Source of the DNA: Macrostomum lignano
Taxonomy: Eukaryota
Direction of reading: 5' to 3'
Assembly (NCBI GenBank): GCA_002269645.1
Contig: NIVC01003012.1
Span: 35,379 to 73,650, forward strand
Length of the DNA: 38,272 nt
Under the pieces are notes generated by a model. The model was not told the origin of the DNA and did not search any database. It saw only the letters and a list, made by a program, of their open reading frames with translations. Shown here one piece after another: positions 2,437 through 35,759 of this stretch (position 1 is its first letter; every line of letters begins with the position of its first letter). Made by a program: the position numbers and the translations under genes.

Positions 2437-3457
2437 ATGGAACCCATCAAGCTACAATGGAACCCCATCAAGCTACAATAGAACCCCATCAAGCTACAAT
2501 GGAACCCCATCAAGCTACAATGTAAACCCATCAAGCTACAGTGCAACCCATCAAGCTACAATGGAACCCCATCAAGCTACAATGGAACCCCATCAAGCTA
2601 CAATGGAACCCCATCAATCTACAATGGAACTCCATCAAGCTACAATGTAAACCCATCAAGCTACAGTGCAACCCATCAAGCTACAATGGAACCCCATCAA
2701 GCTACAATGGAACCCCATCAATCTACAATGGAACTCCATCAAGCTACAATGTAAACCCATCAAGCTACAATGCAACCCATCAAGCTACAATGGAACCCCA
2801 TCAAGCTACAATGCAACCCATCAAGCTACAATGGAACCCCATCAAGCTACAATGGAACCCCATCAATATGCAATGGAACCCCATCAAGCTACAATGTAAC
2901 CCCATCAAGCTACAATGTAACCCCATCAAGCTACAATGGAACCCCATCAAGCTACAATGGAACCCCATCAAGCTACAATGTAACCCCATCAAGCTACAAT
3001 GTAACCCCATCAAGCTACAATGGAACCCCATCAAGCTACAATGGAACCCCATCAAGCTACAATGTAACCCCATCAAGCTACAATGGAACCCCATCAAGCT
3101 ACAATGGAACCCCATCAAGCTACAATGTAACCCCATCAAGCTACAATGGAACCCCATCAAGCTACAATGGAACCCCATCAAGCTACAATGGAACCCCATC
3201 AATCTACAATGGAACCCCATCAAGCTACAATGGAACCCCATCAATCTACAATGGAACCCCATCAAGCTACAATGGAACCCCATCAATCTACAATGGAACT
3301 CCATCAAGCTACAATGGAACCCCATCAAGCTACAATGGAACCCCATCAAGCTACAATAGAACCCCATCAAGCTACAATAGAACCCCATCAAGCTACAATG
3401 GAACCCCATCAAGCTACAATGGAACCCCATCAAGCTACAATGGAACCCCATCAAGCT
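2437..3457. repeat. 21-bp minisatellite (ATGGAACCCCATCAAGCTACA)n, about 48 copies
   Basis: Unit read directly from the sequence; some 20-bp variants near the start; translates as 7-aa repeats in several frames. Confidence 0.98.
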
Positions 3458-6436: not shown

Positions 6437-6720
6437 TGTCTTAGTGATTGCCTCCTTATCTTTAAATAAAACAAATATTGGCAGGAGGGCTGTCGGCACC
6501 TGGCGCAATGCGCTGACGGCAATTCTGCCCATTGCGCTGATTCCTGAGCACAACACACAAGCGCGCCAATGCTGTACACAGACACGCGCTCACACAGGGA
6601 GTACAGGGGCCCTGGTTTTCTTATCGACAGGCACTCCCTCCGGACCAATTTGTTTTTCTCCACACAAGAATCGAACCAGGGGTGCTAACCCGACCGCTAA
6701 AGCCCCGCCCGAGCGCTCAC

Positions 6721-7329
6721 CTGGAAATAGTCCTTGCTTTTAACCGGGTCCGGTTTCATAGTCTTGGCGCCGGGCTTCCAGTTGGCCGGGCAGACTTCGC
6801 CGTGCTTGTCGGTGAACTGGAAGGCCTGCACCAGACGGAGAGTCTCGTCAACGGACCGTCCAACAGGCAGGTCGTTGATTGTGATCTGCCTGAGCTGGCC
6901 CTTCTCGTTGATAATGAACAGGCCGCGGAAGGCGATGCCCTCGTCGCCTTTGAGCACACCGTAGGCGCGGCTAATCGCGTGAGACGGATCGGCGAGCAGC
7001 GGCATGTTGAGCCGGCCGAGTCCGCCGTCCTTGCGAGCCGTGTTGGTCCAGGCCAGGTGGACAAAGTGAGTGTCGGTGCTGCAGGCCACCAGTTCGCAGT
7101 TGGCCTTGCGAAAGTCTTCGGCCCGATCGCTGAAGGCGATGATCTCGGTGGGGCAGACAAAGGTGAAGTCGGCCGGATAGAAGAACAGCACAACATATTT
7201 GCCGCGATAGTTGGCCAGGCTGATGTCGGCGAACGACTGGTCGGGCATCACGGCTTTGCCGGCAAAGTCGGGCGCCTGGCAGCCTGGCAACAGTTGCTGG
7301 GCGGACATCTGGTCGGGCTTGTTAGCTAG
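6721..7329 (-). CDS. PRDX: Typical 2-Cys peroxiredoxin (AhpC/Prx1 subfamily), main exon
   Basis: Motifs [19 protein letters not shown] (peroxidatic Cys), [37 protein letters not shown] (resolving Cys) and YF. Acceptor CCCAG|CTA at 7330/7329 has an upstream ACTAAT branch point. Donor CAG|GTGAGC at 6721. If the last intron is retained, the ORF ends at 6697. Confidence 0.97.
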
Positions 7330-7432
7330 CTGGGATGGATGGGGCGGGTTGTAGATCAGATTAGTATTGACAGACTTATTCATTCAAAGTTTACTGGATT
7401 GCCACTTGGTAACTGCGGCGGCTGTTAAGTCT

Positions 7433-8413
7433 GGCAGTTTGGGATTCTTAAGCTGTGTGACAGTTTGGAGGCGATTCTTAAGCTGCGTGACAGTTTGGAG
7501 GCGATTCTTAAGCTGTGTGACAGTTTGGAGGCGATTCTTAAGCTGTGTGACAGTTTGGAGGCGATTCTTAAGCTGCGTGACAGTTTGGGGGCGATTCTCA
7601 AGCTGTGGGACAGTTTGGAGGCGATTCTAAAAGATGTGTGGCAGTTTGGAGGCGATTCTTAAGCTGTGTGACAGTTTGGAGGCGATTCTCAAGCTGTGTG
7701 GAACAGTTTGGAGGCGATTCTCAACCTGTGTGAAACAGTTTGGGGGCGATTCTCAACCTGTGGAACAGTTTGGAGGCGATTCTTAAGCTGTGTGACAGTT
7801 TGGAGGCGATTCTCAACCTGTGTGATAGTTTGGGGCGATTCTTAAGCTGTGGGACAGTTTGGGGGCGATTCTCAAGCTGTGGGACAGTTTAAGGGCGATT
7901 CTCAAGCTGTGGGACAGTTTAAGGGCGATTCTCAAGCTGTGTGACAGTTTGGGGGCGATTCTCAACCTGTGTGACAGTTTGGGGGCGATTCTCAACCTGT
8001 GTGACAGTTTGAGGGCGATTCTCAACCTGTGTGACAGTTTGAGGGCGATTCTTGAGCTGTTTGACAGTTTGGGGGCGATTCTTAAGCTGTGGGACAGTTT
8101 AAGTGCGATTCTCAAGCTGTGTGACAGTTTGGGGGCGATTCTCAACCTGTGTGACAGTTTGGGGGCGATTCTCAACCTGTGTGACAGTTCGAGGGCGATT
8201 CTTGAGCTGTTTGACAGTTTGGGGGCGATTCTTAAGCTGTGTGACAGTTTGGGGGCGATTCTCAAGCTGTGGGACAGTTAAAGGACGATTCTCAAGCTGT
8301 GTGACAGTTTGGAGGCGATTCTCAAGCTGTGGGACAGTTTAAGGGCGATTCTTAAGCTGTGTGACAGTTTGGAGGCGATTCTCAAGCTGTGGGACAGTTT
8401 AAGGGCGATTCTT
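7433..8413. repeat. 30-bp minisatellite (GACAGTTTGGAGGCGATTCTTAAGCTGTGT)n, about 32 copies
   Basis: Unit read directly; lies about 100 nt inside the peroxiredoxin intron from the acceptor. Confidence 0.98.
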
Positions 8414-9552: not shown

Positions 9553-10412
9553 AGAGATTCTGAGGGTTGTTTGTGTGAGATTCTGAGGGTGGTTTGTGTG
9601 AGATTCTGAGGGTGGTTTGTGTGAGATTCTGAGGGTGGTTTGTGTGAGATTCTGAGGGTGGTTTATGAGAGATTCTGAGGGTGGTTTGCGTGAGATTCTG
9701 AGGGTGGTTTGCGTGAGATTCTGAGGGTGGTTTGTGTGAGATTCTGAGGGTGGTTTGCGTGAGATTCTGAGGGTGGTTTATGTGAGATTCTGAGGGTGGT
9801 TTGTGTGAGATTCTGAGGGTGGTTTATGTGAGATTCTGAGGGTGGTTTGTGTGAGATTCTGGGGGTGGTTTATGCGAGATTCTGAGGGTGGTTTGTGTGA
9901 GATTCTGAGGGTGGTTTATGTGAGATTCTGAGGGTGGTTTGTGTGAGATTCTTAGGGTGGTTTGCGTGAGATTCTGAGGGGGGTTTATGTGAGATTCTGA
10001 GGGTGGTTTGTGTGAGATTCTGAGGGTTGTTTATGCGAGATTCTGAGGGTGGTTTGTGTGAGATTCTGAGGGTGGTTTATGTGAGATTCTGAGGGTTGTT
10101 TGTGTGAGATTCTGAGGGTTGTTTATGTGAGATTCTGAGGGTGGTTTATGTGAAATTCTGAGGGTGGTTTATGTGAAATTCTGAGGGTGGTTTATGTGAA
10201 ATTCTGAGGGTGGTTTATGTGAAATTCTGAGGGTGGTTTATGTGAGATTCTGAGGGTGGTTTGTGTGAGATTCTGAGGGTGGTTTGTGTGAAATTCTGAG
10301 GGTGGTTTGTGTGAAATTCTGAGGGTGGTTTGTGTGAAATTCTGAGGGTGGTTTATGTGAAATTCTGAGGGTGGTTTGTGTGAGATTCTGAGGGTGGTTT
10401 ATGTAAGATTCT
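9553..10412. repeat. 23-bp minisatellite (GAGATTCTGAGGGTGGTTTGTGT)n, about 37 copies
   Basis: Period measured from 9577 to 9600; variants TATGT/TGCGT and GAAATT. Confidence 0.98.
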
Positions 10413-12248: not shown

Positions 12249-13264
12249 AGCTCAGTCAGTGGATCCAGAATTAACACAGTGGCGTGAGCAGCTCAGTCAG
12301 TGGATCCAGAATTCACACAGTGGCGTGAGCAGCTCAGTCAGTGAATCCAGAATTCACACAGTGGCGTGAGCAGCTCAGTCAGTGAATCCAGAATTAACAC
12401 AGTGGCGTGAACAGCTCAGTCAGTGGATCCAGAATTAACACAGTGGCGTGAGCAGCTCAGTCAGTGGATCCAGAATTAACACAGTGGCGTGAGCAGCTCA
12501 GTCAGTGGATCCAGAATTCACACAGTGGCGTGAACAGCTCAGTCAGTGGATCCAGAATTAACACAGTGGCGTGAGCAGCTCAGTCAGTGAATCCAGAATT
12601 AACACAGTGGCGTGAACAGCTCAGTCAGTGGATCCAGAATTCCCACAGTGGCGTGAACAGCTCAGTCAGTGAATCCAGAATTCACACAGTCGCGTGAGCA
12701 GCTCAGTCAGTGAATCCAGAATTCACACAGTCGCGTGAGCAGCTCAGTCAGTGAATCCAGAATTAACACAGTGGCGTGAACAGCTCAGTCAGTGGATCCA
12801 GAATTCACACAGTGGCGTGAACAGCTCAGTCAGTGGATCCAGAATTAACACAGTGGCGTGAACAGCTCAGTCAGTGGATCCAGAATTAACACAGTGGCGT
12901 GAGCAGCTCAGTCAGTGAATCCAGAATTAACACAGTGGCGTGAACAGCTCAGTCAGTGGATCCAGAATTCCCACAGTGGCGTGAACAGCTCAGTCAGTGA
13001 ATCCAGAATTCACACAGTCGCGTGAATAGCTCAGTCAGTGGATCCAGAATTAACACAGTGGCGTGAACAGCTCAGTCAGTGAATCCAGAATTTCCACAGT
13101 GGCGTGAACAGCTCAGTCAGTGAATCCAGAATTCACACAGTCGCGTGAATAGCTCAGTCAGTGGATCCAGAATTCACACAGTGGCGTGAGCAGCTCATTC
13201 AGTGAATCCAGAATTCACACAGTGGCGTAAACAGCTCAGTCAGTGAATCCAGAATTCAGTGGCG
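12249..13264. repeat. 41-bp minisatellite (CAGCTCAGTCAGTGGATCCAGAATTAACACAGTGGCGTGAG)n, about 24 copies
   Basis: Unit read directly; fills the putative intron between the 13289 and 12095 exons. Confidence 0.98.
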
Positions 13265-13717: not shown

Positions 13718-15518
13718 GACTGCAGGTTTGCCTGTTCTACTAAGCCTTTTAGCCGACGCAGTACAGCTTCGAGGTCGGTCGCTCTAACAGCGAGGCGATG
13801 CGAGTTCACTCGCTATATTCTCTTTCCAGCCAAGGAAATCTCCCTTCGTCCTCCCGTCTCGCTCTTTTTTTCCTCTATACAGCTGGCCAATGGCATCGGC
13901 GCATCCACGTCGAGGTCAATTTGGTAGGCCATTTGTTTACATGCTTCTAGGGCAAGTTCTATTTTAATAAAATAGAACTTATAAGGTTTGCGCTGCTCTA
14001 CTTTAAGTAGGGAAGCAAGAAAAAAAGATTATTCTTTATATGCAAGTCCTCACTTTCCGTCCCAAACTTGATAACTGACAAGTATTCGTTTACATTGTAT
14101 ATCAAATCCACCACCCCTCTGTTCATATTATTTGCACATGAGCGCCGAGCGAGAGAGTGAATTGTGGAACAACTGGTGGTGAAATAAGCCTGCCCGTCGA
14201 GGCACAAGAAAGAAAGCCGGAAATTCAGAAACAGATCTGCTTATTTAGAGTTACTTTGGTAGTATGAACTGACTAAGCAGTCAAGAGTATAAACTGAAAA
14301 TATGTGAAAAAATATTAAGATTCGTAAATCGTGATCGTTTCCCAATAAATAACCCAAATACTGAAATAATCGCCGAGCCTAATAAATATTACAACCAACT
14401 AAAAAAGCTAGATTCTCTCTTTACGCTTCAAAGGGATAAAGGAGAGATAAGCAAAAGAAAAAGGCAGTAAACTACTAACTAGAAGCTAATAAAAGTAGCC
14501 TATGTCCTAGTAAAGTAGTAAATGAATGTTTCAATGACCTTCACTGTTACTGTTAGCAGGAGCGATTATTAATATCAGCTAGAAAAATTTATAATTGAAA
14601 AATCAAACGATAACCACAAAAACAGTTAATAGAAGAATCAGCAATGCTTACCGATTGAAAGAGTTTAGAAAATAAAAAGATTTGAGACAAGTCAGGTCTC
14701 CAGACTTCAAGTAGAGTGCAGGGAAGAAAGAAAGGCCACAAAGGAGAGACTTGTTCAATTTAGCTAATTTTATATAATTACACTGGCTTCGTGTACAATG
14801 GATCAATGTACGGTGGAAAAACTCCTAACCCCCCAAGACTGAGTGGGGCAGTGTGTGTGGTGGAATTTCACCCAATAAAACCGACGGAGCGAGTGGGGAG
14901 TGGGGACGCGAGGGCTTCAGCGGCGGGCCAGTAAAAGCTGAGCTAGCGGGGGGGGGTTATTATAAACATCTCGGGGTGTTCCAGTTGAACTCTTACCGCA
15001 AGCCCCGTACCCCTCTGACCATTCCAGACTTGCAATGTACTTAGTGCAGGATGATTACAATATACAGTGGACACGCACTTGCACACGACACCTAGGGAGG
15101 CTCGACTGTTGGCTCATTAATTAAGTTCCATTCAGTTTAGTTGATACTGAAAAGTTATTATATATTTTTTCTAGAAACTTCTCCTTGACTAAACAATATA
15201 CTTTACAAAAAATGGAAGTTAAATAAACGGGCCTAAACTTTTATCTCAATAATAATTAACTTGTATAGTTGAAAAAAATAATTTTTTAAAACAATGGCAT
15301 TACAAAACAGCCTGTCTGAGCTGTCTCATATAGCCCCGTTCCCTGTAAACCAAACACAGGCACTATACGAGCGTAAAGGTAATTCAAAGGGTATAAAATA
15401 GTTTAGGCCATACATGTAATAAGGGCTTGTAAATAACCCACCCTCCTCTAAAAAATCATAAAAAATAATACGAGCGTTTTTCGAAAAAGGCTGCTTGACT
15501 ACTTTAAGTAGTGAATCG

Positions 15519-15748
15519 CTAAGATATCATTTGGAGCGCTAAGATCTGATCTGGGGCACTAATATCTCATCTGGGCCGCTAAGATCTCATCTGGGGCGCT
15601 AAGATCTCATCTGGAGCGCTAAGATCTCATCTGGAGCGCTAAGATCTCATATGGGGCACTAAGATCTCATATGGGGCACTAAGATCTCATATGGGGCACT
15701 AAGATCTCATCTGGGGCGCTAAGATCTCATCTGGGGCGCTAAGATCTC
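15519..15748. repeat. 20-bp minisatellite (CTAAGATCTCATCTGGGGCG)n, about 11 copies
   Basis: Direct reading. Confidence 0.97.
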
Positions 15749-15812
15749 TACTTCAGCATACAAATTCAAGGAAGGAATTTTTCTAAATAAATTTATTACA
15801 GATTTTACCTAC

Positions 15813-16001
15813 CTGATTAGACACGGAAAACTGTTGAATACGGCTGCTCAGTCCTGTTGCAGCAATCGGGCTGTTTGTTAGCTGCATGTACTGCCAAGGC
15901 CTTGTAACAACCGTGCTCATTGACCTGGGCAGCTGTGTCAGACAGCGGGTCAGGCATAGGCCCGACCTCATAGCTCTGAACGAAGCCACTGAGACAGACA
16001 T
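15813..16001 (-). CDS. Putative first exon of peroxiredoxin encoding a mitochondrial presequence (63 aa)
   Basis: MSVSVASFRAMRSGLCLTRCLTQLPRSMSTVVTRPWQYMQLTNSPIAATGLSSRIQQFSVSNQ has 6 Arg, no Asp/Glu, is Ser/Leu/Thr-rich and has an R..QFS.S motif. Strong phase-0 donor CAG|GTAGGT joins the 7329 acceptor in frame. Confidence 0.7.
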
Positions 16002-16324
16002 GACGCTAAATTGTATATTGAGCTCAAAGCATGCAATGTTTAATTGAGAAATAGTTGCTATTAAACAACTTTAAACATTGCATTAAACATACGAGATAAA
16101 TACTTCATAATTTAGAAATAAAGTACACAAAAAGGTTTATTGAAGGCCTAATAATTAGTCTAATTTTATTTATACCTATTTTAAGTTAATACGAGAAATC
16201 AATTGATAAACGGTTACGTTAATAAACAAAGTGAATAACTATTAAAGCTATTTTAGGCTGTTTAAGGTAAATTATTTAACTTCAAGTTAAGTAGTCTTAT
16301 TAAAATCTCAATTTTTATCAATAT

Positions 16325-16345
16325 GGCCTCAAAAGGGCCGTTTTT
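16325..16345 (-). terminator. Degenerate histone-type 3' stem-loop (one stem base missing)
   Basis: AAAAAC-GGCCCTTTTGAGGCC-ATA; about 30 nt of upstream flank is similar to the copy at 16678. Confidence 0.55.
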
Positions 16346-16659
16346 ACAAGATAGAATACAGAAAAAAACTTCCTACAACAAACAATTTAATCTCTTTAAG
16401 GATAATACCAGGTATATATATTAGATATCTAACTCAACTCAAGAGGTACAGGTACAGGTACCTCTTCAGGTAAGAGGTAAATTTTAAAAATAAAAAAAGT
16501 AAAAACAATAATATAATAATAATATAATTGGAGGTTTGACGCAACGACTTCGCCGACATCGCCCCGTACATTCCGTTGTCGCCTAAGCATGCAAGCCCAC
16601 CAATACTGTATTCAGGCACGCACTCATACACCCGCTCACATGAATAAGAATGGTAAGAT

Positions 16660-16698
16660 AACTCTTTTAATTACGGTGGCCCTCAAAAGGGCCGTTTT
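16660..16698 (-). terminator. Replication-dependent histone mRNA-type stem-loop plus purine-rich downstream element
   Basis: AAAAC-GGCCCT-TTTG-AGGGCC-ACC (perfect 6-bp stem, 4-nt UUUN loop, canonical flanks), then AAAAGAGTT 9 nt downstream. Confidence 0.75.
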
Positions 16699-17441
16699 AC
16701 GAGATAAAATCTACAAAAAGACCTTAGCTTATGGAAGGAAGGAAAAAAGACTAAATGAAATAGAATAAACAAAATTAATTTCAATCAAGGGAAGCGGGCA
16801 CTAGAAGTAACTGATTAAAAGAAATTTCAAGTTGATGAAGAATAGAAGGGTTAAAGATCGGAACACACACTTTAATTAGTTATCTGGAGAGTTCCTGAGC
16901 AATCCAAAAGCAAAATGACTATTACTCATTCCACTGACACTAGCTGTCGCAAATAGAGAAGGAAAGAAAGTATTATACAATGCGTAGACAGTAGCACGTA
17001 CATAGGAATACATAGAAATTCATGTTAATATGTTTAAAACCAGGCATGGGCCATAAAATATCAGCCACAAATTCTAAACGGTATAAGGTACAGAATATCT
17101 GAAAGTATCAAAATAATCAACAAAGAAAAATCTATAAAATGACATATTACTCAATAAAATAGCTCAAAGAATACACTAGTTACAATAAAAATAAAATTAT
17201 CACACTGAATTCTAATTGTCAAAACTGAGCCCGAACCCTCCCGCGCGGGTGGAACACAATGATGCGGTCCAGTTCCTGGCCTAAGGCCTATATATACACG
17301 AGCTCTTGCGGCTCGTTCAGGACCCATATTCACGCCTCTGGCTGACTCTGTAAGCGAATTGCAGACAGTATTAGGAGAGCTAATTTGCAAGCACGCCAAT
17401 ACGAGCCTATTCTGCAGTTGCTATACTAATTCTAAATTCTA

Positions 17442-17798
17442 ATGGCTGACAGAAATTCCGACTCTGCTACGCCATCGCCAGTGCCACGTGGACACCGAGA
17501 AATTGTGCGAAAACTCGTCGAAGCTAGAGGCACCCAACTGGACCATATTATGTACAGTCTGAAGCATTACCTGCGTCGAATTAGCATGATGCGACTGGAC
17601 AGGCGTCTACCGCAACGAACTCAGGTCATCGCCGCCAAGAGAGCACTTAAGCAGGGCTACAACCGGGTCGAGGCTATGGCAGTCGTCAGGACTATTGCTG
17701 AGGATCTGCGCCGGGACTGGGCTGGCAATGGAGGACCAGTGTACCGCCAGCTGCTAGTAGATGAAGTCAAGTGGCTGCTTGATGACTTTTATAACTGA
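17442..17798 (+). CDS. Orphan 118-aa basic/helical protein, single coding exon
   Basis: GC-elevated ORF inside AT-rich DNA; acceptor-like TTCTGCAG at 17417 before the ATG; AATAAA at about 17906. No family confidently recognised. Confidence 0.6.
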   Translation: MADRNSDSATPSPVPRGHREIVRKLVEARGTQLDHIMYSLKHYLRRISMMRLDRRLPQRTQVIAAKRALKQGYNRVEAMAVVRTIAEDLRRDWAGNGGPVYRQLLVDEVKWLLDDFYN

Positions 17799-22663: not shown

Positions 22664-22797
22664 TATATAAGAGGGACTGGCACTTGAAAAACAGTTTGTG
22701 ACAAAGCCTGACTCTGAACTGAAACTTCTCAGGTAAGATCCCGGCGAATTTCCAGTTGCTCATCATAGTTGAACTTTTGTTACGACCATTGCAACAG
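22664..22797 (+). promoter_or_regulatory. TATA box and 65-nt 5'UTR intron of cystatin
   Basis: TATATAA at 22664; donor CAG|GTAAGA at 22732/22733; acceptor CAACAG at 22797, 4 nt before the ATG. Confidence 0.65.
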
Positions 22798-22801
22798 AAA
22801 C

Positions 22802-23251
22802 ATGAAGTGCGTCATTATGCTATCCATTGTCGCCTTCTGTCTGGCCGGCGTCGCCATTGGCTCCCTGATCGGCGGCAAGCGCCCGCTGACACAGGAAGAC
22901 GTCAAATCGTCTGAGTTCCGCGGCGCCTTGGACATGGCCACTCTGGAGATGAACCGGCTGAGCAGCCACCCCAGATTCCACGCAGTGCTCAACTTCGTGC
23001 GCGGCACCAAACAGGTGGTTGCCGGCGTCCTCTACGAATTCAGCATCGTTTTGCGCGCCACCGAGTGCGAGAACCACGAGGCGCAGAACCTGGAGAACTT
23101 GGCCAAGTGCGCCCCAGTGAACTTGCTCGGCGCCTCAGAGTTCCACTGCGACTTCAAGGTTCTCTACCAGCCGTGGTCCGGCAACTCTGAGTACCGGGTT
23201 ATGAGCGAGCCGTCCTGCGTGTCACCCCGGGAGGTGCCCTTCGCCGGCTAA
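22802..23251 (+). CDS. Secreted type-2 cystatin (cysteine protease inhibitor), 149 aa
   Basis: Signal peptide MKCVIMLSIVAFCLAGVAIG; N-terminal GG; QVVAG (QxVxG); PW; two C-terminal Cys pairs; AATAAA at 23395. Confidence 0.95.
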   Translation: MKCVIMLSIVAFCLAGVAIGSLIGGKRPLTQEDVKSSEFRGALDMATLEMNRLSSHPRFHAVLNFVRGTKQVVAGVLYEFSIVLRATECENHEAQNLENLAKCAPVNLLGASEFHCDFKVLYQPWSGNSEYRVMSEPSCVSPREVPFAG

Positions 23252-23574: not shown

Positions 23575-24590
23575 TTGAATCTGAATCTGAATCCGAAATC
23601 AGAATCCGATCTGAATCCGAATCCGAATCTGAATCCGAATCTGAATCCGAATCTGAATTTGAATCCGAATCTGAATCCGAATCTAAATTTGAATCAGAAT
23701 CTGAATCCGAATCTGAATCCGAATCTGAATCCGAATCTAAATCCGAATCTGAATCCGAATCTGAATCCGAATCTGAATCCGAATCCGAATCCGAATCCGA
23801 ATCTGAATCCGAATCTGAATCCGAATCTGAATCCGAATCTGAATCCGAATCTGAATCCAAATCTGAATCCGAATCTGAATCTGAATCCGAATCCGAATCC
23901 GAATCCGAATCTGAATCCGAATCTGAATCCGAATCTGAATCCGAATCTGAATCCGAATCCGAATCCGAATCTGAATCCGAATCTGAATCCGAATCTGAAT
24001 CCGAATCTGAATCCGAATCTGAATCCGAATCTGAATCCGAATCTGAATCCGAATCTGAATCCGAATCTGAATCCGAATCCGAATCTGAATCCGAATCTGA
24101 ATCCGAATCTGAATCCGAATCTGAATCCGAATCTGAATCCGAATCTGAATCCAAACCCGAATCTGAATCCAAATCCGAATCTGAATCCAAATCCGAATCT
24201 GAATCCAAATCCGAATCTGAATCTGAATCCGAATCTGAATCCAAACCCGAATCTGAATCCAAATCCGAATCTGAATCCAAATCCGAATCTAAATCCAAAT
24301 CCGAATCTGAATCTGAATCCGAATCTGAATCCAAACTCGAATCTGAATCCAAATCCGAATCTGAATCTGAATCCGAATCTGAATCCAAATCCGAATCTGA
24401 ATCCAAATCCGAATCTGAATCCAAATCCGAATCTGAATCGAAATCCGAATCTGAATCCAAACCCGAATCCGAATCTGAATCCGAATCTGAATCCAAACCC
24501 GAATCCGAATCTGAATCCGAATCCGAATCCAAATCTGAATCCGAATCCAAATCTGAATTCGAATCTGAATCTGAATCTGAATTTGAATCT
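23575..24590. repeat. (GAATCC/GAATCT)n hexanucleotide array, about 1 kb
   Basis: Alternating GAATCC and GAATCT units with AAATCC/AAACCC variants in the right half. Confidence 0.99.
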
Positions 24591-26187
24591 GCATATATAG
24601 TAGGATTCCACTATAACAAAGACACTACTTTTTCAACGCTCTTCTAGTAGTATATCAAAGTTTTTTTGTTGTATTTAGCTCGTAGAATTCTAAATCTTGA
24701 TCGAATTACAACTGCGAATTTACTCACTAGTAGCTTTGGATTAAAATATAACAAAGAATAGCGTCTCTCGCACACAAGCTAACTCAGGAAACCTGTTCGC
24801 AAATTAATAATGCCTACCCTTATTATTTTTCGGCTCGTAGCAGCCCAGCTATAATAATGATCATCTTCTAACAGGTGAGGCAGGTGCGAAAAATATAATT
24901 AGCATGTTGTCGCCTTGGCATGAATCGCCATGCAGGTTTTTTGGCTCTGACCGGATGTGAAAAAAAAGAAATTGTATGAAATTTAAGTGTAGGTCGATAT
25001 TCTCATTCATATGCGCATGAGAGCTGGGATTTGTTAATCTCGCTTGTTCTCTCTCTCTCTCTCTAGGACTAATCCCCAACAGGTGCTTCCCTGCTCGCAC
25101 AGAGCATTCAATATGCTCGCCTAAGACCAAGTTTCTTGCATGTCTATCGCTGCCGATCGTGCCCTGGCATACACCTAGTTATTAGTTGAGTTGAATCACA
25201 GAGAATTAACACTGTATGGTCAAGGGATAAATTGAAAATTCTGGAATTGAGGAGTGAGAGAGAGTGGGTGAGCGTGTGAAAGTCCCTGAGCAGAACAATA
25301 TGGGAATTAGCAGCAGCAAATGTGAGGCAGATGTAATAAAAGGAAAGTAAAGGCAGGTGCTGAACAAATGCTTGTGAGGCAAAATTATCACTGGCTGTCA
25401 GGCAGGCAGTCGCCAGTACAAACAGTACATATATATAGATTGACCTTATAATCAGGCGTTTGGGAAGAGACAAAAAAGCGACGAATGGATAGTCGCGAAA
25501 AATCCTTTAGCAAACCTCGGGAGCGGGGAGCGGGGAGCGGCGGGGGATATTTGGCGTAAGCCCCACCTCGCCTCCTCGCGGAGCGAGCGCCTTCTTCTCC
25601 TCGCTCAGTAAGTCAACAGAGACAGTCAGTCAGAGTCTAATAAAGATGAGCTGACTGCTCCAATAACTTCCTCACTGGAGAGAGAAGCGGGCTCCAAGTG
25701 TGCCAAACACGCTTTCTCTCTCTCTCTCTCGTCTCCCATTCCCAACGCGCGGGACATCAGTTCTGCTTTTAGAAGCAGCAGAAGCGGAGGCGTCGGCGGC
25801 AGCAGCGGCTGGTTGTGTGCGTGACCCAGAAAGCAATTTCTAGCAAAGATTTTTCAATCCAGTCCGCATTGATCAGCGCAGCTACATGGATTTGAGTTCT
25901 GCAATTTCGCTTCACCTGCAGAGGCTTGATATTGAAGAGCAGTTCGAGCAATTTAAATAATTATCCCCACCGCCTCAGCTCCGGGAAAGACAATTAAAGC
26001 CACACAAGTGGACGAGACTGCAGACTTCTGCAGACTGGCGGCAGAGCATTGTAGGCTGCACGCCCCCGATGGTGACTGCATGGGTTCTCAAACAGCTCGG
26101 CATCTACTCGATTTTCAGACATAGGGCATAATTTTTTTATTCAATTGCTGAAAGGATTTCTGCTGCGCAATTTAATCATTAAGTTGA

Positions 26188-26990
26188 AGATTCAATGATC
26201 CAATGACCCAATGACCCAATTACCCAAAAACCCAAATACCCAATTACTCGATGAACCAATGACCCAATGACCCAAATACCCAAATACCCAATGACCCAAT
26301 GATCCAATGATCCAGTGCTTAATGACCCAATGACCCAATGACCCAATTACCTAAATACCCAATGAACTAGTGACCCAGTGACTTAATGACCCAATGATCC
26401 AATGACCGAATGATCCACTGACCCAATTATCCAATGACCCAATCTGGCGAGTAAAGAAACCAAATAACCCAATTACTCAATGACCCAATCATCCAATGAC
26501 CCAATGACCCAATGATCCAATGATCCAAGGATCCAATGACCCAATGACCTAATAACCCAATGACCCAATGATCCAAGGATCCAATGACCCAATGACCTAA
26601 TAACCCAATGACCCAATGACCCAATGACTCAATGACCCAATGACCCAATGACCCAATGACCCAATGACCCAATGACCCAATGACCCAATGATCCAAGGAT
26701 CCAATGACCCAATGACCTAATAACCCAATGACCCAATGATCCAAGGATCCAATGACCCAATGACCTAATAACCCAATGACCCAATGACCCAATGACCCAA
26801 TGACCCAATGACTCAATGACCCAATGACCCAATGACCCAATGACCCAATGATCCAATGATCCAATGACCCAATGACCCAATGACCCAATGACCCAAATAC
26901 CCAATGAACCAATGACCCAGTGACTCAATGAACCAATGACCCAGTGACCCAATGACCCAATGACCCAATGACCCAATGATCCAATGAACC
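26188..26990. repeat. (TGACCCAA)n octanucleotide array
   Basis: Direct reading, with TGATCCAA variants. Confidence 0.97.
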
Positions 26991-27623
26991 AACCTGGCGA
27001 GTAAAGAAACCAAATAAACCAGACAGCGGACATTGTATAATTATTAAAGTTTATTTCATCAGATATAGCTCGATTTGGTGCACAACTGTTATAATTGTGG
27101 CTGTACAGACAGCACTGACAAGCTGTACAAATGCTAAATTAAAATTGATCAAATATTTTGTGCAGTTCATCCATTTTTTGTGCCACATCAATTTGCTGTT
27201 CGCTGTTAAACACAGGGGGGGCATTTTTAATTTCAGTTTTGATGGTCGAGCTTTCGCACACACAATGCGCGAAGTTACTCGTACATGACAAATTTCGTAC
27301 TGAAAAAAGCAGGATAAAAACAATTAAATTTCAGCCATGAAACCGACAAAAGAGAAACAGAATTGACATACATAGAGAAAGCAACAATTTTCTTTTGACC
27401 AAAATAAGCAACGGCAGCAGAAGAAAGGACAGAGAAACACGCGGCAAAAATATGACAGGTTATAGTTTGTACGTGCTAGAGGCTTGGAGAAGTTGATAAG
27501 AGGAAAAGAGAGGGGGGGGCAACCTTCGGGCAACTCGATGTCAAAATTCGGAAATAACGAATGCGAGACTCTGGAAAGGAAGAATGCCAGCCAGGCCAGT
27601 TGCTGCTGCTGCTGCAGAAGCTT

Positions 27624-28550
27624 CTAGAAGACGCAACTGCTGCCCAGCTTGCCGCTGTCAACGCCCGCCGTAGCCGCCGCCGCCGCCGCCGCGGCCGCCA
27701 GCGCAGCAGCCGTTGTCGGCTTGCCGTTCTCTTCGTCCTCTTCGTCCTCGGTCTCGTCATCGTCTGGAAGCTCCTCGGAGGTGACGGCGGCGGCGGCCGC
27801 GGCGCACATAGCCTGATGGTAGTCGCCTGGAGAGCAGCTGCCGATGCGCTGGAAGTACTCCATGTGCTGCTGGTAGGCCAGCTGCTGCCCACCGCTGCCA
27901 TAGTAGTCCACAGCGCCATCGAGATGCTGCTGCCTGTGCATCGACTGCTGAAGCTGCTGCTGCTGCTGCTGCTGCTGGTGATGGTGCATCGGCACAGGAA
28001 TCGCGTACTGCACCTGCTGGTGCTGATGATGATGCGGTGGCTGCTGCTGCTGCTGCACCTGCGGCTGCGGACTCGGCGCCGAGTACATGTGCATCGGCAG
28101 GCCTATCGCGGCTGCTGCCGCGGCTGCCGCGGCGGACGCGCAGTCGCCGTACGGATAGTTCAAGTAGATGCCACCGGGGCTGTAGCTGTCGCCGCCGCCG
28201 GCGCTGCCACAGTACTGCCTGGCATCGTACGGCTGACCATCCAGATAGCCGATCTGTCTGGCGCTGCTGTAGCCGGCAGCTGAGCCGTACTGCGACTGGA
28301 TCGAATAGCTCCGATAGCCGTCGTCTCCGAGCACAGTCAGCTCTTCCAGAGTCGGCTGCGTTGAGGCCGGGTCGAAATGATCGACGATATGGTGATGCTG
28401 ATGATGCTGATGATGGAGCTGCTGGAGCTGCTGCTGTTGCTGATGCTGATGGTTGGAAGACAGCGGCTGCTGGTGCTGATGAAGTTGAGGTTGCTGCTTC
28501 GGCGGCGGCTGCAGCGGTCCCATAATGAAGTCGTGTTGCTGCTGCTGCTG

Positions 28551-28590
<40 letters not shown>

Positions 28591-28913
28591 AGGCCAATGA
28601 CGTCAGCCGATCGATCAAATGACTGCGAGCCGCGCGCTGCCGTCTTCGAAGAGCCGCCGCCGCCGCTGCCGCCGCTGCTGCCACTGCTGCCTCCAGAGCC
28701 GCCGCTCTTGCCAGTTGAAGTCGCCTGGCGCGGCTGCGGGTCCGGGAAGGCCATGCTGTACAGGATCTCCGGGTCGCACACAAACTTGTAGACGTACCGC
28801 TCGCCTGCCACCTTCTGCATGATGCCCTTCTCGTAGTAATAGCGCAGCGACCGGCTCAGCTTGTCGTAGTTCATGGCTGGCCGGTTCTTCTGGATGCCCC
28901 ACAGCCGGGCCAC
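27624..28913 (-). CDS. ETV1/4/5: PEA3-family ETS factor, terminal exon (second half of the ETS domain plus long low-complexity tail)
   Basis: [56 protein letters not shown] is the PEA3 signature; acceptor CATCAG|GTG at 28914/28913, phase 0. Confidence 0.96.
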
Positions 28914-29185
28914 CTGATGATTGATTGGGGTTGGGGTTGGGGCTCCACTCATACTGCACGGTGAGAGACGTGTCTGATTCTGCGTGTGTGCCAAGCATGA
29001 CTGTAAATAGCGTTTCTGGAATTGCAAACATTATTTAATAATAGACTAGAATTGGGAAGAGATCGGGATTAAAGATACTGACGACTCGTCTGTCCCAGAG
29101 AAATTTTGAATATCTTCAGCCCAATCTCAATGCCAAGATGAACAAATTTCTAATGATTATCGAGTAGGAAGTTTCGCTTGCAAGA

Positions 29186-30169: not shown

Positions 30170-30900
30170 TGGAATATTACATTTCTAAGAGTATGAAATC
30201 ATACCGAAAATATGAAATTTCCAAGACTATTAAATCATGTTTGAAATATCAAATATGACATCTCCAAGAATGTTAACTATAGTGGATCATGAAATTTCCA
30301 AGAATATGAACTCATACCGAAAATATGAAATTTCTAAGAATTCAAACTACACTGGAAATATGAAATTTCTAAGAATTCAAACTACACTGGAAATATTAAA
30401 TTTCTAAGAATTCAAACTACACTGGAAATATTAAATTTCTAAGAATTCAAACTACACTGGAAATATGAAATTTCTAAGAATTCAAACTACACTGGAAATA
30501 TGAAATTTCTAATAATTCAAACTACACTGGAAATATGAAATTTCTAAGAATTCAAACTACACTGGAAATATGAAATTTCTAATAATTCAAACTACACTGG
30601 AAATATGAAATTTCTAAGAATTCAAACTACACTGGAAATATGAAATTTCTAAGAATTCAAACTACACTGGAAATATGAAATTTCTAAGAATTCAAACTAC
30701 ACTGCAAATATGAAATTTCTAATAATTCAAACTACACTGGAAATATGAAATTTCTAAGAATTCAAACTACACTGGAAATATGAAATTTCTAAGAATTCAA
30801 ACTACACTGGAAATATGAAATTCCAAGAGTATGAACTATACTGAAAGTATGAATTTTAAACAGATAAGAATAACTGGAAAGATGAAATTTCTAAGAATAC
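30170..30900. repeat. 35-bp AT-rich minisatellite (AAATATGAAATTTCTAAGAATTCAAACTACACTGG)n, about 15 core copies
   Basis: Core 30320-30835 with degenerate flanking units. Confidence 0.97.
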
Positions 30901-31821
30901 AACCTAACTTCAAGCATAACAGGTGGGACCTGCAGTTAGTTAACCACAGGCAATATTGGTATTGAGTGTCAGTTTGACAGTTTCAATATGCAGAATTCTA
31001 TCCCCAATTAGAAGCGGTTGTTAAGATCTGTCAGGCTGGTACAGGTGGGAGCTTGCAGCGGTGGTCAAGCTGATTCGAGGCCCAGATTATACAACCGATA
31101 GGAACACCTGCTGATCAATTTTCGACACAATAAATGTCTTCAAGCACTTGAGTCCGAATTCGAATCTTAGGCCGGTGTCCATTTCACAAAACAGTGCGAT
31201 TCTCGCAGAGCATCGTGGAGGCCTATTGAGCCAATGAAGAGTCTCCAGCTATGCTCATAATCCGGCCTTCTCTTATCAATATTGAGAAAGGTGGCCTTGG
31301 TATGGATACTCAAGCCCCCATAGGCCCTGACTGAGGGATAGATACTCCTAGCTGAAGGGCCGGAGGGCGGAGCGCGCGGGGACGGACGGGCGCAGACCCT
31401 CTCGAAGATCAATGCTCCCTAATTAGAGGACTTCTCTGGTGGCTTAGATTTTAAGCCTCAGATAACAGGGAGCTGAGGATTGAGAAGCTGAAGACTCGCA
31501 GAGTTGAAAGAGGATTTCGGCGCGAACGCCCCTGGACACGGGGTGAATTAATGAAAATTTTGCTGCTTTCCCCAGCCTAGGCTAGGGGCCATTAAACTAA
31601 TGAAACTCAGTCAGCATCTCCCTGATCCTCAGCGAGAGTCACTGCGGGCCGGCTCACTCTAACCAGTTTGTATAAAAATAATAATCATAATCCGTTAAAA
31701 CTCTGTTCAAGACCAGCCAGTCTGAGACCCCGCGGCCTGCGGTTTGAGGAAAAGCAAATTTTCAATTAATTAAAACACGATTAGCTAGGGAGAGGAGGAG
31801 CTGTTTTTTGCTTCATCATTT

Positions 31822-32495
31822 TAGTCTAACAATCTCAAAGTCTAGTCTCGCAATCTCAGCGTCTAGCCTCGCAATCTCAAAAAAATCTCACAATCTCAAA
31901 CTCTAGTCTCACAATCTCTGCGTCTAGTCTCACAATCTCAAACTCTAGTCTCACAATCTCAGCGTCTAGTCTCACAATCTCAAACTCTAGTCTCACAATC
32001 TCAAAGTCTAGTCTCACAATCCTACACTCTAATTCCACAATCCCACACTCTAGTCTCACAATCTTAAACACTAGTCTCACAATCTCAAAGCCTAGTCTCC
32101 CAATCTCAAAGCCTAGTCTCCCAATCTCAAAGCCTAGTCTCCCAATCTCAAAGCCTAGTCTCCCAATCTCAAAGCCTAGTCTCCCAATCTCAAAGCCTAG
32201 TCTCCCAATCTCAAAGTCTAGTCTCACAATCCCGCACTCTAAGTCACAAATCTCACACTCTAGTCTCACAATTCTACACTCTAGTCTCACAGTCCCACAC
32301 TCTAGTCTCACAATCCTACACTCTAGTCTCACAGTCCCACACTCTAGTCTCACAGTCCCACACTCTAGTCTCACAATCCTACACTCTAGTCTCACAGTCC
32401 CACACTCTAGTCTCACAATCCTACACTCTAGTCTCACAGTCCCACACTCTAGTCTCACAATCCCGCACTCTAGTCTCACAGTCCCACACTCTAGA
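31822..32495. repeat. 21-bp minisatellite (CTAGTCTCACAATCTCAAACT-type), about 32 copies
   Basis: Direct reading; begins about 15 nt from the ETS exon donor. Confidence 0.97.
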
Positions 32496-35128: not shown

Positions 35129-35759
35129 GCAACATTGTGGAGAGTGTCCTATCCAATACAAGAGTGGCATTTCGCGTGTGACATCCAAGAGGGCAATCTC
35201 TCATTTCTCGATTTGTAGTGTTCGAATTTCTATAATTCAACAGTTTAAAAGTTATTTTTTAATAACTTCTGAAACAGACATCCGACAGATTTCAAATAAA
35301 AACTCGCCAAAATCCTGGCTTTGTTTCTTTAGCAAAAAAGCAGAATTTAAGCAGGCAAAATCAGGAGAATTTCAAGCCAAACCCCCCAATTCCAGCCAGC
35401 CGGTGCCCCCCTCCCCAGTCCACCTGGAGCAAATGGTGGAGCTTTTTTCAATTCTAAAGCCTCAACCAGTCGTTAATTGTTGCGGGTCGGGCTATCGGAT
35501 CCAGAAAAACGATTTATGACACAATTGCAGACAGGCAGCCAGTCCCGTGTCGAGTTCTCGAGTTAAACCAGACCATAATTCAAGTCAGTCAGCCGATGCC
35601 CAGCTCCAACTTCAAACCCCGGCTCGCTCTGCTCTTGATTAGGATTTTTGAGCACAGTTTTTTAAATCAGATGATTTTTTTGTGGACTGATGCCCTCCGT
35701 TCCTCCGCGTTACGGACGGACTGAACGAGACTCGATAACCGTTTACTCTGGTCTCTGCT

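Follow-up and report, generated by a model that had tools for sequence, protein, structure and literature searches.

Two histone-type 3' stem-loops away from any histone gene in the Macrostomum lignano genome

Replication-dependent histone mRNAs are usually described as the sole cellular mRNAs whose 3' end is a stem-loop and not a poly(A) tail, and the SLBP of human cells binds histone mRNAs only (PMC4604434). A stretch of the Macrostomum lignano genome raises the question of what such a signal means where no histone gene accompanies it. A sequence-only reading had described two histone-type stem-loops there, here designated SL1 and SL2, and had proposed either co-option of the signal or relics of a decayed histone cluster. 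We analysed the window, that is, the last 38,272 nt of the M. lignano contig NIVC01003012.1 (assembly GCA_002269645.1); a window position x corresponds to position 35378 + x of the record. Positions 1-26025 of the window matched locus L014 at 100% identity. SL1 and SL2 are located in 1.4 kb of non-coding spacer, flanked by a 118-aa orphan gene and a mitochondrial-type peroxiredoxin gene, which form a divergent pair:

15810 to 16025, minus strand: peroxiredoxin exon 1 (tblastn of the annotated 276-aa product P0002, and gene model)
16301 to 16344, minus strand: SL2 module (sequence reading, Rfam Histone3 match and fold)
16658 to 16698, minus strand: SL1 module (sequence reading, Rfam Histone3 match and fold)
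17442 to 17798, plus strand: 118-aa orphan gene of the BOX15_Mlig026206g2 type (ORF 99% identical to BOX15_Mlig026206g2)

The peroxiredoxin is a mitochondrial-type 2-Cys enzyme with a mitochondrial-type presequence, and its main exon is at 7383-6700 on the minus strand; the gene gave a match to the Pfam family AhpC-TSA. Its annotated 5' end is at 16025 and its ATG at 16001, which places both stem-loops upstream of the peroxiredoxin promoter, as had been stated, with SL2 300 nt upstream of the annotated 5' end. The 118-aa gene has an ordinary AATAAA about 110 nt past its stop codon and is unconnected with the stem-loops. It matched no Pfam family, and its homologues were found in M. lignano only.

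On the minus strand, SL1 consists of AAAAC (16698-16694), the stem arm GGCCCT (16693-16688), the loop TTTG (16687-16684), the stem arm AGGGCC (16683-16678), ACC (16677-16675), GTAATT and then AAAAGAGTT (16668-16660), letter for letter and position for position what the sequence-only reading had reported. As RNA, 16698-16660 reads AAAAC-GGCCCU-UUUG-AGGGCC-ACC-GUAAUU-AAAAGAGUU, in which 16693-16688 pairs with 16683-16678 to give a 6-bp stem. After the 6-nt spacer, a purine core, AAAAGAG (16668-16662), starts +10 nt from the stem, so that the layout in short is TATCTYGTAAAAC...ACC...AAAAGAG. SL1 has the bases that SLBP contacts: a G at stem position 2, a U-A closing pair, U at loop positions 1 and 3, and an A-rich 5' flank. 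This list of determinants is established knowledge of the SLBP-RNA complex.

SL2 reads AAAAAC-GGCCCT-TTTG-AGG-CC-A at 16345-16324 on the minus strand. Its 5' flank, 5' arm and loop are like those of SL1, and its 3' arm is one G short in the window copy, leaving five pairs and a bulge. Downstream, AUA replaces ACC, and only a weak, interrupted A-rich run follows, with no clear purine core. The purine-rich downstream element that had been claimed is thus borne out in SL1, where AAAGAG stands at +10 (with eight AAAGAG on the 38-kb minus strand, the chance of one at this position is p ~0.005), but not in SL2. In folding, the SL1 hairpin was the minimum-free-energy structure (-12.3 kcal/mol); SL2 gave -11.5 kcal/mol when intact versus -7.5 kcal/mol with the deletion.

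The two elements have in common an exact 18-nt repeat, AAAACGGCCCTTTTGAGG, at a spacing of 354 nt, and a 26-nt core is identical between them. The common stretch is GTAAAA(A)CGGCCCUUUUGAGGGCCA plus about 12 nt further upstream (ATTYTATCTYGT), and in a stem-loop-anchored alignment the 5' flank of SL1 was matched as follows:

16699 to 16710, minus strand: 12-nt 5' flank of SL1, ATTTTATCTCGT, common to SL2 (stem-loop-anchored alignment)

The SL2 counterpart, ATTCTATCTTGT (16357-16346), agreed at 10 of the 12 positions. Beyond about 12 nt the likeness of the flanks did not exceed that of shuffled sequence; of the similar 30-nt upstream flank that had been noticed, only this part holds. A tandem duplication of a 354-nt unit was also considered and rejected, as the flanks were no more alike than chance.

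We compared both elements with the histone 3' UTR stem-loop family of Rfam, Histone3 (RF00032), for which the curated gathering score is 34 bits. They resemble this family in their 6-bp stem with two G-C pairs at the base and a U-A pair at the top, their 4-nt loop with U at positions 1 and 3 and their A-rich 5' flank, and SL1 also in its ACC 3' flank and its AAAGAG 10 nt after the stem; pairing of the latter with U7 is putative. Unlike RF00032, they have no histone ORF 20-60 nt upstream or anywhere in the 38 kb, the last base of the loop is G, SL2 is without ACC and a clear purine core, and the scores in the window were 31.3 bits for SL1 (E = 5e-7 in 701 nt and 4e-5 in 58.6 kb) and 19.6 bits for SL2. 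An Rfam scan at the gathering threshold reported nothing, both being below 34 bits, and Histone3 was the sole meaningful Rfam match in the region. By every readable feature of their sequence, SL1 and SL2 appear to be genuine histone-type SLBP/U7-style signals, and on present evidence the pair adds one more case of a known element, in an unusual setting.

The assembly contains two further copies of the locus, on NIVC01000846.1 (L001/L013) and NIVC01002203.1 (L002), which we take to be haplotypes or homeologues of a recently duplicated genome. In the spacer, these sister copies (B and C) are 97.6% identical to the window (copy A) and 99.4% identical to each other. Both elements were found in all three copies. 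The SL1 core is the same in all of them, with the purine core AAAAAAG in B and C, and both SL1 and SL2 are perfect in B and C, where they scored 32.3 and 33.8 bits; the 6-bp stem with its 4-nt loop is thus present in SL1 of all copies and in SL2 of B and C, and every copy of the locus has at least one intact stem-loop. Two earlier statements can be qualified here. A sub-threshold covariance score had been named as a result that would count against the signal; the scores are indeed under 34, but the intact copies fall short by just 0.2-2.7 bits. Also, SL2 had been called a degenerate copy with a lost stem G, which is true of the window but not of the sister copies. The lost G is a one-base length change in a G-run, private to copy A, and could be an assembly error.

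Across the three copies, the 1,416-nt spacer showed 54 variable events. Five of them fell in the modules and their 5' flanks, versus 4.2 expected; among these five were the SL2 stem deletion in copy A and, in B and C, G-to-A changes in the purine stretches that follow the two stem-loops. There was no sign of purifying selection on the modules, in a test that three copies of 97.6-99.4% identity (2.4% divergence) leave nearly without power.

The UUUG loop had been regarded as atypical, but it does not disqualify the elements. A scan of public metagenome contigs with AAACGGCCCTTTTGAGGGCCA returned 10 contigs, and a viral-contig scan with the 21-mer returned none. The identical 21-mer, UUUG loop included, was found in environmental eukaryote contigs with Histone3 scores of 32.1-35.7 bits, and in contig L004 the stem-loop lies 1 kb upstream of an H4 gene, which indicates that the UUUG loop is in natural use. 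With other flanks, the same stem-loop reached 35.5-35.7 bits (L004 and L009). Across all stem-loops collected, the purine run started at +10 to +15 nt after the stem, so the position of the SL1 core is normal.

We then examined what surrounds the stem-loops. Tblastn with Drosophila H2A, H2B, H3, H4 and the H1 globular domain, covering the 38-kb window and three further loci that include the sister copies, gave noise only: no match had E <2.5 in the window or in L001, and none had E <1 in the other loci. The absence of a histone CDS from the window, claimed on reading alone, is confirmed and extends to the sister loci. On the minus strand of 16250-17440 there was no ORF longer than 82 aa, and no ORF ended near SL1 or SL2. 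A small coding gene upstream of the stem-loops was rejected, for the region held short ORFs only, which are broken by 2-, 7- and 18-nt indels between copies. The region contained no tRNA. Candidates from other RNA families were weak chance matches (snoR104, EBV sisRNA), and a structured RNA in the G+C-rich block at 16525-16660 was dismissed on a fold z-score of +0.56.

Some candidate promoter elements were present upstream of the stem-loops on the minus strand:

16590 to 16606, minus strand: 17-nt motif GTATTGGTGGGCTTGCA, with CCAAT on the plus strand at 16600-16604 (15/17 match to 17402-17386)
17289 to 17296, strand not assigned: palindromic TATA-like box TATATATA (sequence reading; conserved in all copies)
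17386 to 17402, minus strand: second CCAAT-containing 17-mer, GTATTGGCGTGCTTGCA (conserved in all locus copies)

Such a 17-mer, GTATTGGYGKGCTTGCA with CCAAT on the other strand, is found in a G+C-richer block upstream of each stem-loop; four of 500 shuffles reached a score as high as the 15/17 match of the pair. GTATTGGTGGGCTTGCA is part of a G+C-rich block of 110 nt that precedes SL2 by about 250 nt, and GTATTGGCGTGCTTGCA falls in a region that also contains the promoter of the divergent 118-aa gene. Judged from these letters, the CCAAT 17-mers may have a promoter role. On the minus strand, TATATATA precedes TCATTG by about 30-36 nt, and would yield a non-coding unit of about 585 nt ending at SL1; it might equally serve the plus-strand gene.

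Our tentative first choice among the readings of this locus is that SL1 and SL2 are orphaned and probably inert processing signals. They would be histone-type 3'-end signals (SLBP-type in both, with a U7-type core in SL1) that lost their coding body, DNA-level leftovers of small replication-dependent-type genes or of the 3' flanks of such genes. The source may have been histone genes or another class of stem-loop-ended genes, and the leftovers would now drift neutrally between the peroxiredoxin and 118-aa genes. Minus-strand transcription by RNA polymerase II might still run through them, starting for instance in the CCAAT/TATA region that they share with the 118-aa gene. If so, SLBP binding and cleavage 4-5 nt past the stem would still be expected of SL1, and the maximal role of the pair would be that of incidental terminators ahead of the peroxiredoxin promoter.

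We favour this orphaned-leftover reading because no ORF is left, because the variation appears unconstrained and because SL2 is incomplete, without ACC and a clear purine core. SL1, and SL2 in copies B and C, show every readable stem-loop determinant, and AAAGAG at +10 is within the natural range; neither the window nor the sister loci have any histone similarity or transposon ORF, no ORF exceeds 82 aa upstream, and indels break the small ones. Variation in the modules, five events against 4.2 expected, includes the break of the SL2 stem and the G-to-A change in the SL1 purine core. The human precedent is a further ground: SLBP has no non-histone targets there, and the single non-histone genomic match to the stem-loop, on chrX (Brooks et al. 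2015), is unexpressed and no real SLBP target (PMC4604434). The sequence anatomy, the missing ORFs and the unconstrained variation between copies are what the data show; the origin as leftovers and the present inactivity we infer.

Several points weigh against orphaned leftovers. The coding body is gone, yet in two copies neither 16-nt palindrome has a flaw; decay alone fails to account for this, and one has to postulate clean deletions or patchy copying on two occasions. The identical 26-nt core amid unrelated flanks is what selection on the core would also give, and the G+C-rich block with the same CCAAT 17-mer before each element resembles two small transcription units. Each locus copy retains at least one intact stem-loop, the copies differ by just 2.4%, so that the missing constraint has almost no statistical power, and molluscs do have non-histone genes with the signal. 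The same palindromes bear on the relic half of the earlier proposal. Histone-type signals without a nearby histone gene are there as described, but relics of a decayed histone cluster in the literal sense fit poorly and are unlikely, because the coding bodies are traceless while the palindromes are perfect.

Known cases of scattered histone signals offer partial parallels. Like the human chrX match and histone pseudogenes, the M. lignano elements are stem-loop motifs outside a working histone gene. Unlike the chrX match, they are two in tandem, one with a downstream purine core, and unlike the pseudogenes, neither has a recognisable pseudogene body beside it. Histone orphons are solitary histone gene copies dispersed from tandem clusters, as in sea urchin and Drosophila. 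They too are pieces of the histone system away from the clusters, but orphons retain the coding region, whereas the M. lignano elements keep the 3' signal only. If the pair is inert, it is a clean example of signal scatter in a repeat-rich, recently duplicated genome, and a warning to annotation pipelines that call histone genes from Rfam matches.

A functional co-option, in which the stem-loops end non-coding units or act as terminators that shield the peroxiredoxin promoter, is rather less likely. In one version, there would be two short RNA polymerase II units, one of about 585 nt (from ~17260 to 16673) and one of 170-250 nt (to ~16320); in the other, the elements would stop antisense transcripts that run upstream from the promoter of the 118-aa gene. 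Both versions predict a shielded peroxiredoxin promoter and RNAs that are bound by SLBP and not polyadenylated. The complete signal in SL1, the tandem arrangement in one orientation pointing to the peroxiredoxin start, the CCAAT 17-mer and TATA-like runs upstream of each unit and the identical cores within unrelated flanks are consistent with co-option, as are the intact stem-loop, at least one, in every locus copy and the large mollusc family of non-histone genes that ends in the same signal with compensatory stem changes. Against it stand the stem-breaking deletion of SL2 in copy A, the purine-core change of SL1 in B and C with no deficit of variation, the want of ACC and a clear purine core in SL2, scores under the Rfam gathering score for both, and the histone specificity of SLBP where tested. 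That the histone SLBP/U7 machinery was recruited for short non-coding transcripts, or for a promoter-upstream stop before a housekeeping gene, we consider unlikely. If the pair were active, the signal would be a general-purpose terminator or a non-coding RNA end; if co-option is true, the signal is used beyond protein-coding histone genes, in a phylum whose mollusc relatives already use it for a large family of non-histone proteins.

Alternatively, the modules could come from a dispersed repeat or mobile element with a terminal histone-like stem-loop, through two independent insertions or as fragments, a reading that we consider less likely still. The shared module is only about 40 nt long with unrelated flanks on either side, and a unit of about 125 nt with the same stem-loop recurs with differing downstream flanks in the environmental contigs L005, L006, L009 and L011, as such an element might. 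However, a four-module profile turned up no further copies when run over the window, the sister loci and an additional 13.6 kb of M. lignano sequence (the repeat search covered about 60 kb of distinct sequence from this species), no terminal inverted repeats or target-site duplications were found, no transposon ORF occurred in the window or the sister loci, and the presence of both elements in all three locus copies also speaks against this reading. A Helitron end was considered in particular: its 3' terminal hairpin is likewise a short G+C-rich hairpin in A+T-rich DNA, but no CTRR follows 10-12 nt after the M. lignano hairpins, whose flanks fit the histone signal, and this candidate was rejected. 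Our literature searches yielded nothing on histone 3' ends in M. lignano, nor on such stem-loops in transposons.

It is very improbable that the elements are 5'-truncated retrocopies of the 3' ends of mature histone mRNAs. The similarity of SL1 and SL2 does stop just after GGGCCA, near the expected cleavage site, and starts about 12-30 nt upstream, as it would in such copies. SL1, however, retains AAAGAG downstream of the cleavage site, and since this core is kept, SL1 is unlikely to derive from a retrocopied mature mRNA; the sequence-only reading had made the same argument, and it stands. In addition, there is no A-tail, no target-site duplication and no coding trace, and it would take a coincidence for two such events to fall 354 nt apart with the same orientation. 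That the hairpins arose by chance in A+T-rich DNA is effectively refuted. Both elements do score under the Rfam gathering score, and scaling of the E-value gives about one 31-bit match per 760-Mb genome, but here a pair of matches shares one strand and an identical 26-nt core at a distance of 354 nt, the intact versions reach 32.3 and 33.8 bits, only 0.33 matches with at most three mismatches are expected in the shuffled window, and 24 nt are identical to the stem-loop of an H4-bearing contig.

The environmental contigs led to a by-product that may outweigh the M. lignano pair in importance. Contigs L007, L008 and L012 contain small non-histone ORFs that end 35-40 nt ahead of the stem-loop. 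Homologues of the L008 ORF occur in the mussel Potamilus streckersoni and other assemblies, and a profile search gave a family of 1,005 cluster representatives; the few named members are 'uncharacterized' proteins of Ostrea edulis and Nucella lapillus. The protein is about 106 aa long, with a predicted two-helix hairpin (pLDDT 86.5) that is not the histone fold. No member is encoded in the window, and homology of the 118-aa gene product to this family was rejected (hhalign probability 0.1%).

Like the M. lignano elements, this mollusc family has the signal outside core histone genes in a lophotrochozoan, with the identical GGCCCUUUUGAGGGCC variant and a purine run at +10. Unlike them, it has an intact conserved ORF upstream. 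Seven further family loci, fetched via protein hits, showed an ORF followed by a Histone3 match of 27.5-37.6 bits, with 24-38 nt from the stop codon to the stem-loop in six and 133 nt in the seventh, whereas the M. lignano elements follow no ORF. Two loci from one tandem-repeat contig (L019, L020) had no stem-loop, and no core histone gene was present on the three homologue contigs tested (L016-L018). The stems of the family include GGCCCU/AGGGCC, GGUCCU/AGGACC and GGCUCU/AGAGCC, that is, compensatory changes. That the signal is normally confined to histone mRNAs, as the sequence-only reading had assumed, is weakened by this non-histone gene family, whose canonical histone stem-loops with compensatory changes directly challenge the 'histone-only' rule.

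The two-helix proteins of about 106 aa form a large family, with 1,005 cluster representatives, and its named members belong to the molluscs Potamilus streckersoni, Ostrea edulis and Nucella lapillus. A search for Pfam and PDB matches to these proteins returned none. The genes are intronless, with a TATA element upstream, and their 3' ends consist of a canonical histone stem-loop followed by a purine-rich element. Stem variants among these stem-loops are compensatory. The family looks like a class of non-histone genes with histone-type 3' ends. The following loci were assigned to it.

Loci of the ~106-aa family
L016, 5001-5354
L017, 125-171 and 1979-2376
L018, 458-859
L021, 472-868
L024, 1850-2338
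L008, 3928-4327, minus strand (metagenome contig)
L012, 1417-1972, minus strand (metagenome contig)
L019, 3001-3324, and L020, 3001-3324: member lacking the stem-loop

L019 and L020 represent one family member repeated at a spacing of ~6.3 kb on an ENA contig, and the stem-loop was absent 3' of its ORF. Because of this member, the family comprises both stem-loop and non-stem-loop genes, a mixture that resembles the situation among histone variants.

When the whole contigs were compared, L008 and L012 each proved to be a rearranged version of the other: L008 1-1910 corresponds to L012 2841-4750, and L008 1784-3784 corresponds to L012 1-2003. It looks as if both derive from a ~4.6-kb unit, tandem or circular, that contains the 106-aa ORF and its stem-loop.

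Four other metagenome contigs carry an identical stem-loop.

Identical stem-loops in metagenome contigs
L005, 1332-1377, minus strand
L006, 2790-2835, minus strand
L009, 541-586, plus strand
L011, 1371-1416, minus strand

The sequence common to these four contigs is only ~110-125 nt around the stem-loop; it stops ~45 nt past it, after which the downstream flanks are unrelated. The 540 nt upstream of the stem-loop in L009 showed no histone similarity. The shared unit is one of two things: a dispersed element that bears the stem-loop, or a multi-copy gene's 3' end.

In the window, the two stem-loops, SL1 and SL2, lie between a peroxiredoxin gene and a gene for a 118-aa protein.

Genes and palindrome in the window
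17442-17798, plus strand: 118-aa gene
15810-16025 (presequence exon) and 6700-7383 (catalytic exon), minus strand: peroxiredoxin gene
16433-16474, between SL1 and SL2: palindromic (GTACCT)n-like stretch
22769-23251, plus strand: cystatin-like secreted protein gene
27624-29027, minus strand: ETS-domain transcription factor gene, C-terminal exon, with long Gln/Ala runs

The 118-aa gene matched no Pfam family, and no homologue of it was detected beyond M. lignano. On L014, the copy of the locus to which the window belongs, the gene is unannotated despite its intact DNA. The annotated peroxiredoxin product is marked 5'-partial because the frame is open upstream of the ATG. The ~8.4-kb intron between the presequence and catalytic exons is crammed with tandem repeats, and more than 12 long micro- and minisatellite arrays (periods of 4 to 90 nt, up to 235 copies) occupy introns and spacers of the window.

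Micro- and minisatellite arrays in the window, among others
850-1789
2437-3457
7443-8412
9554-10412
12249-13258
15517-15748
23577-24591
26193-26992
30289-30906
31822-32494

Most long 'ORFs' in the window are a product of these arrays, whose lengths vary among the three copies of the locus. The (GTACCT)n-like stretch carries an 18-nt deletion in the two sister copies, B and C.
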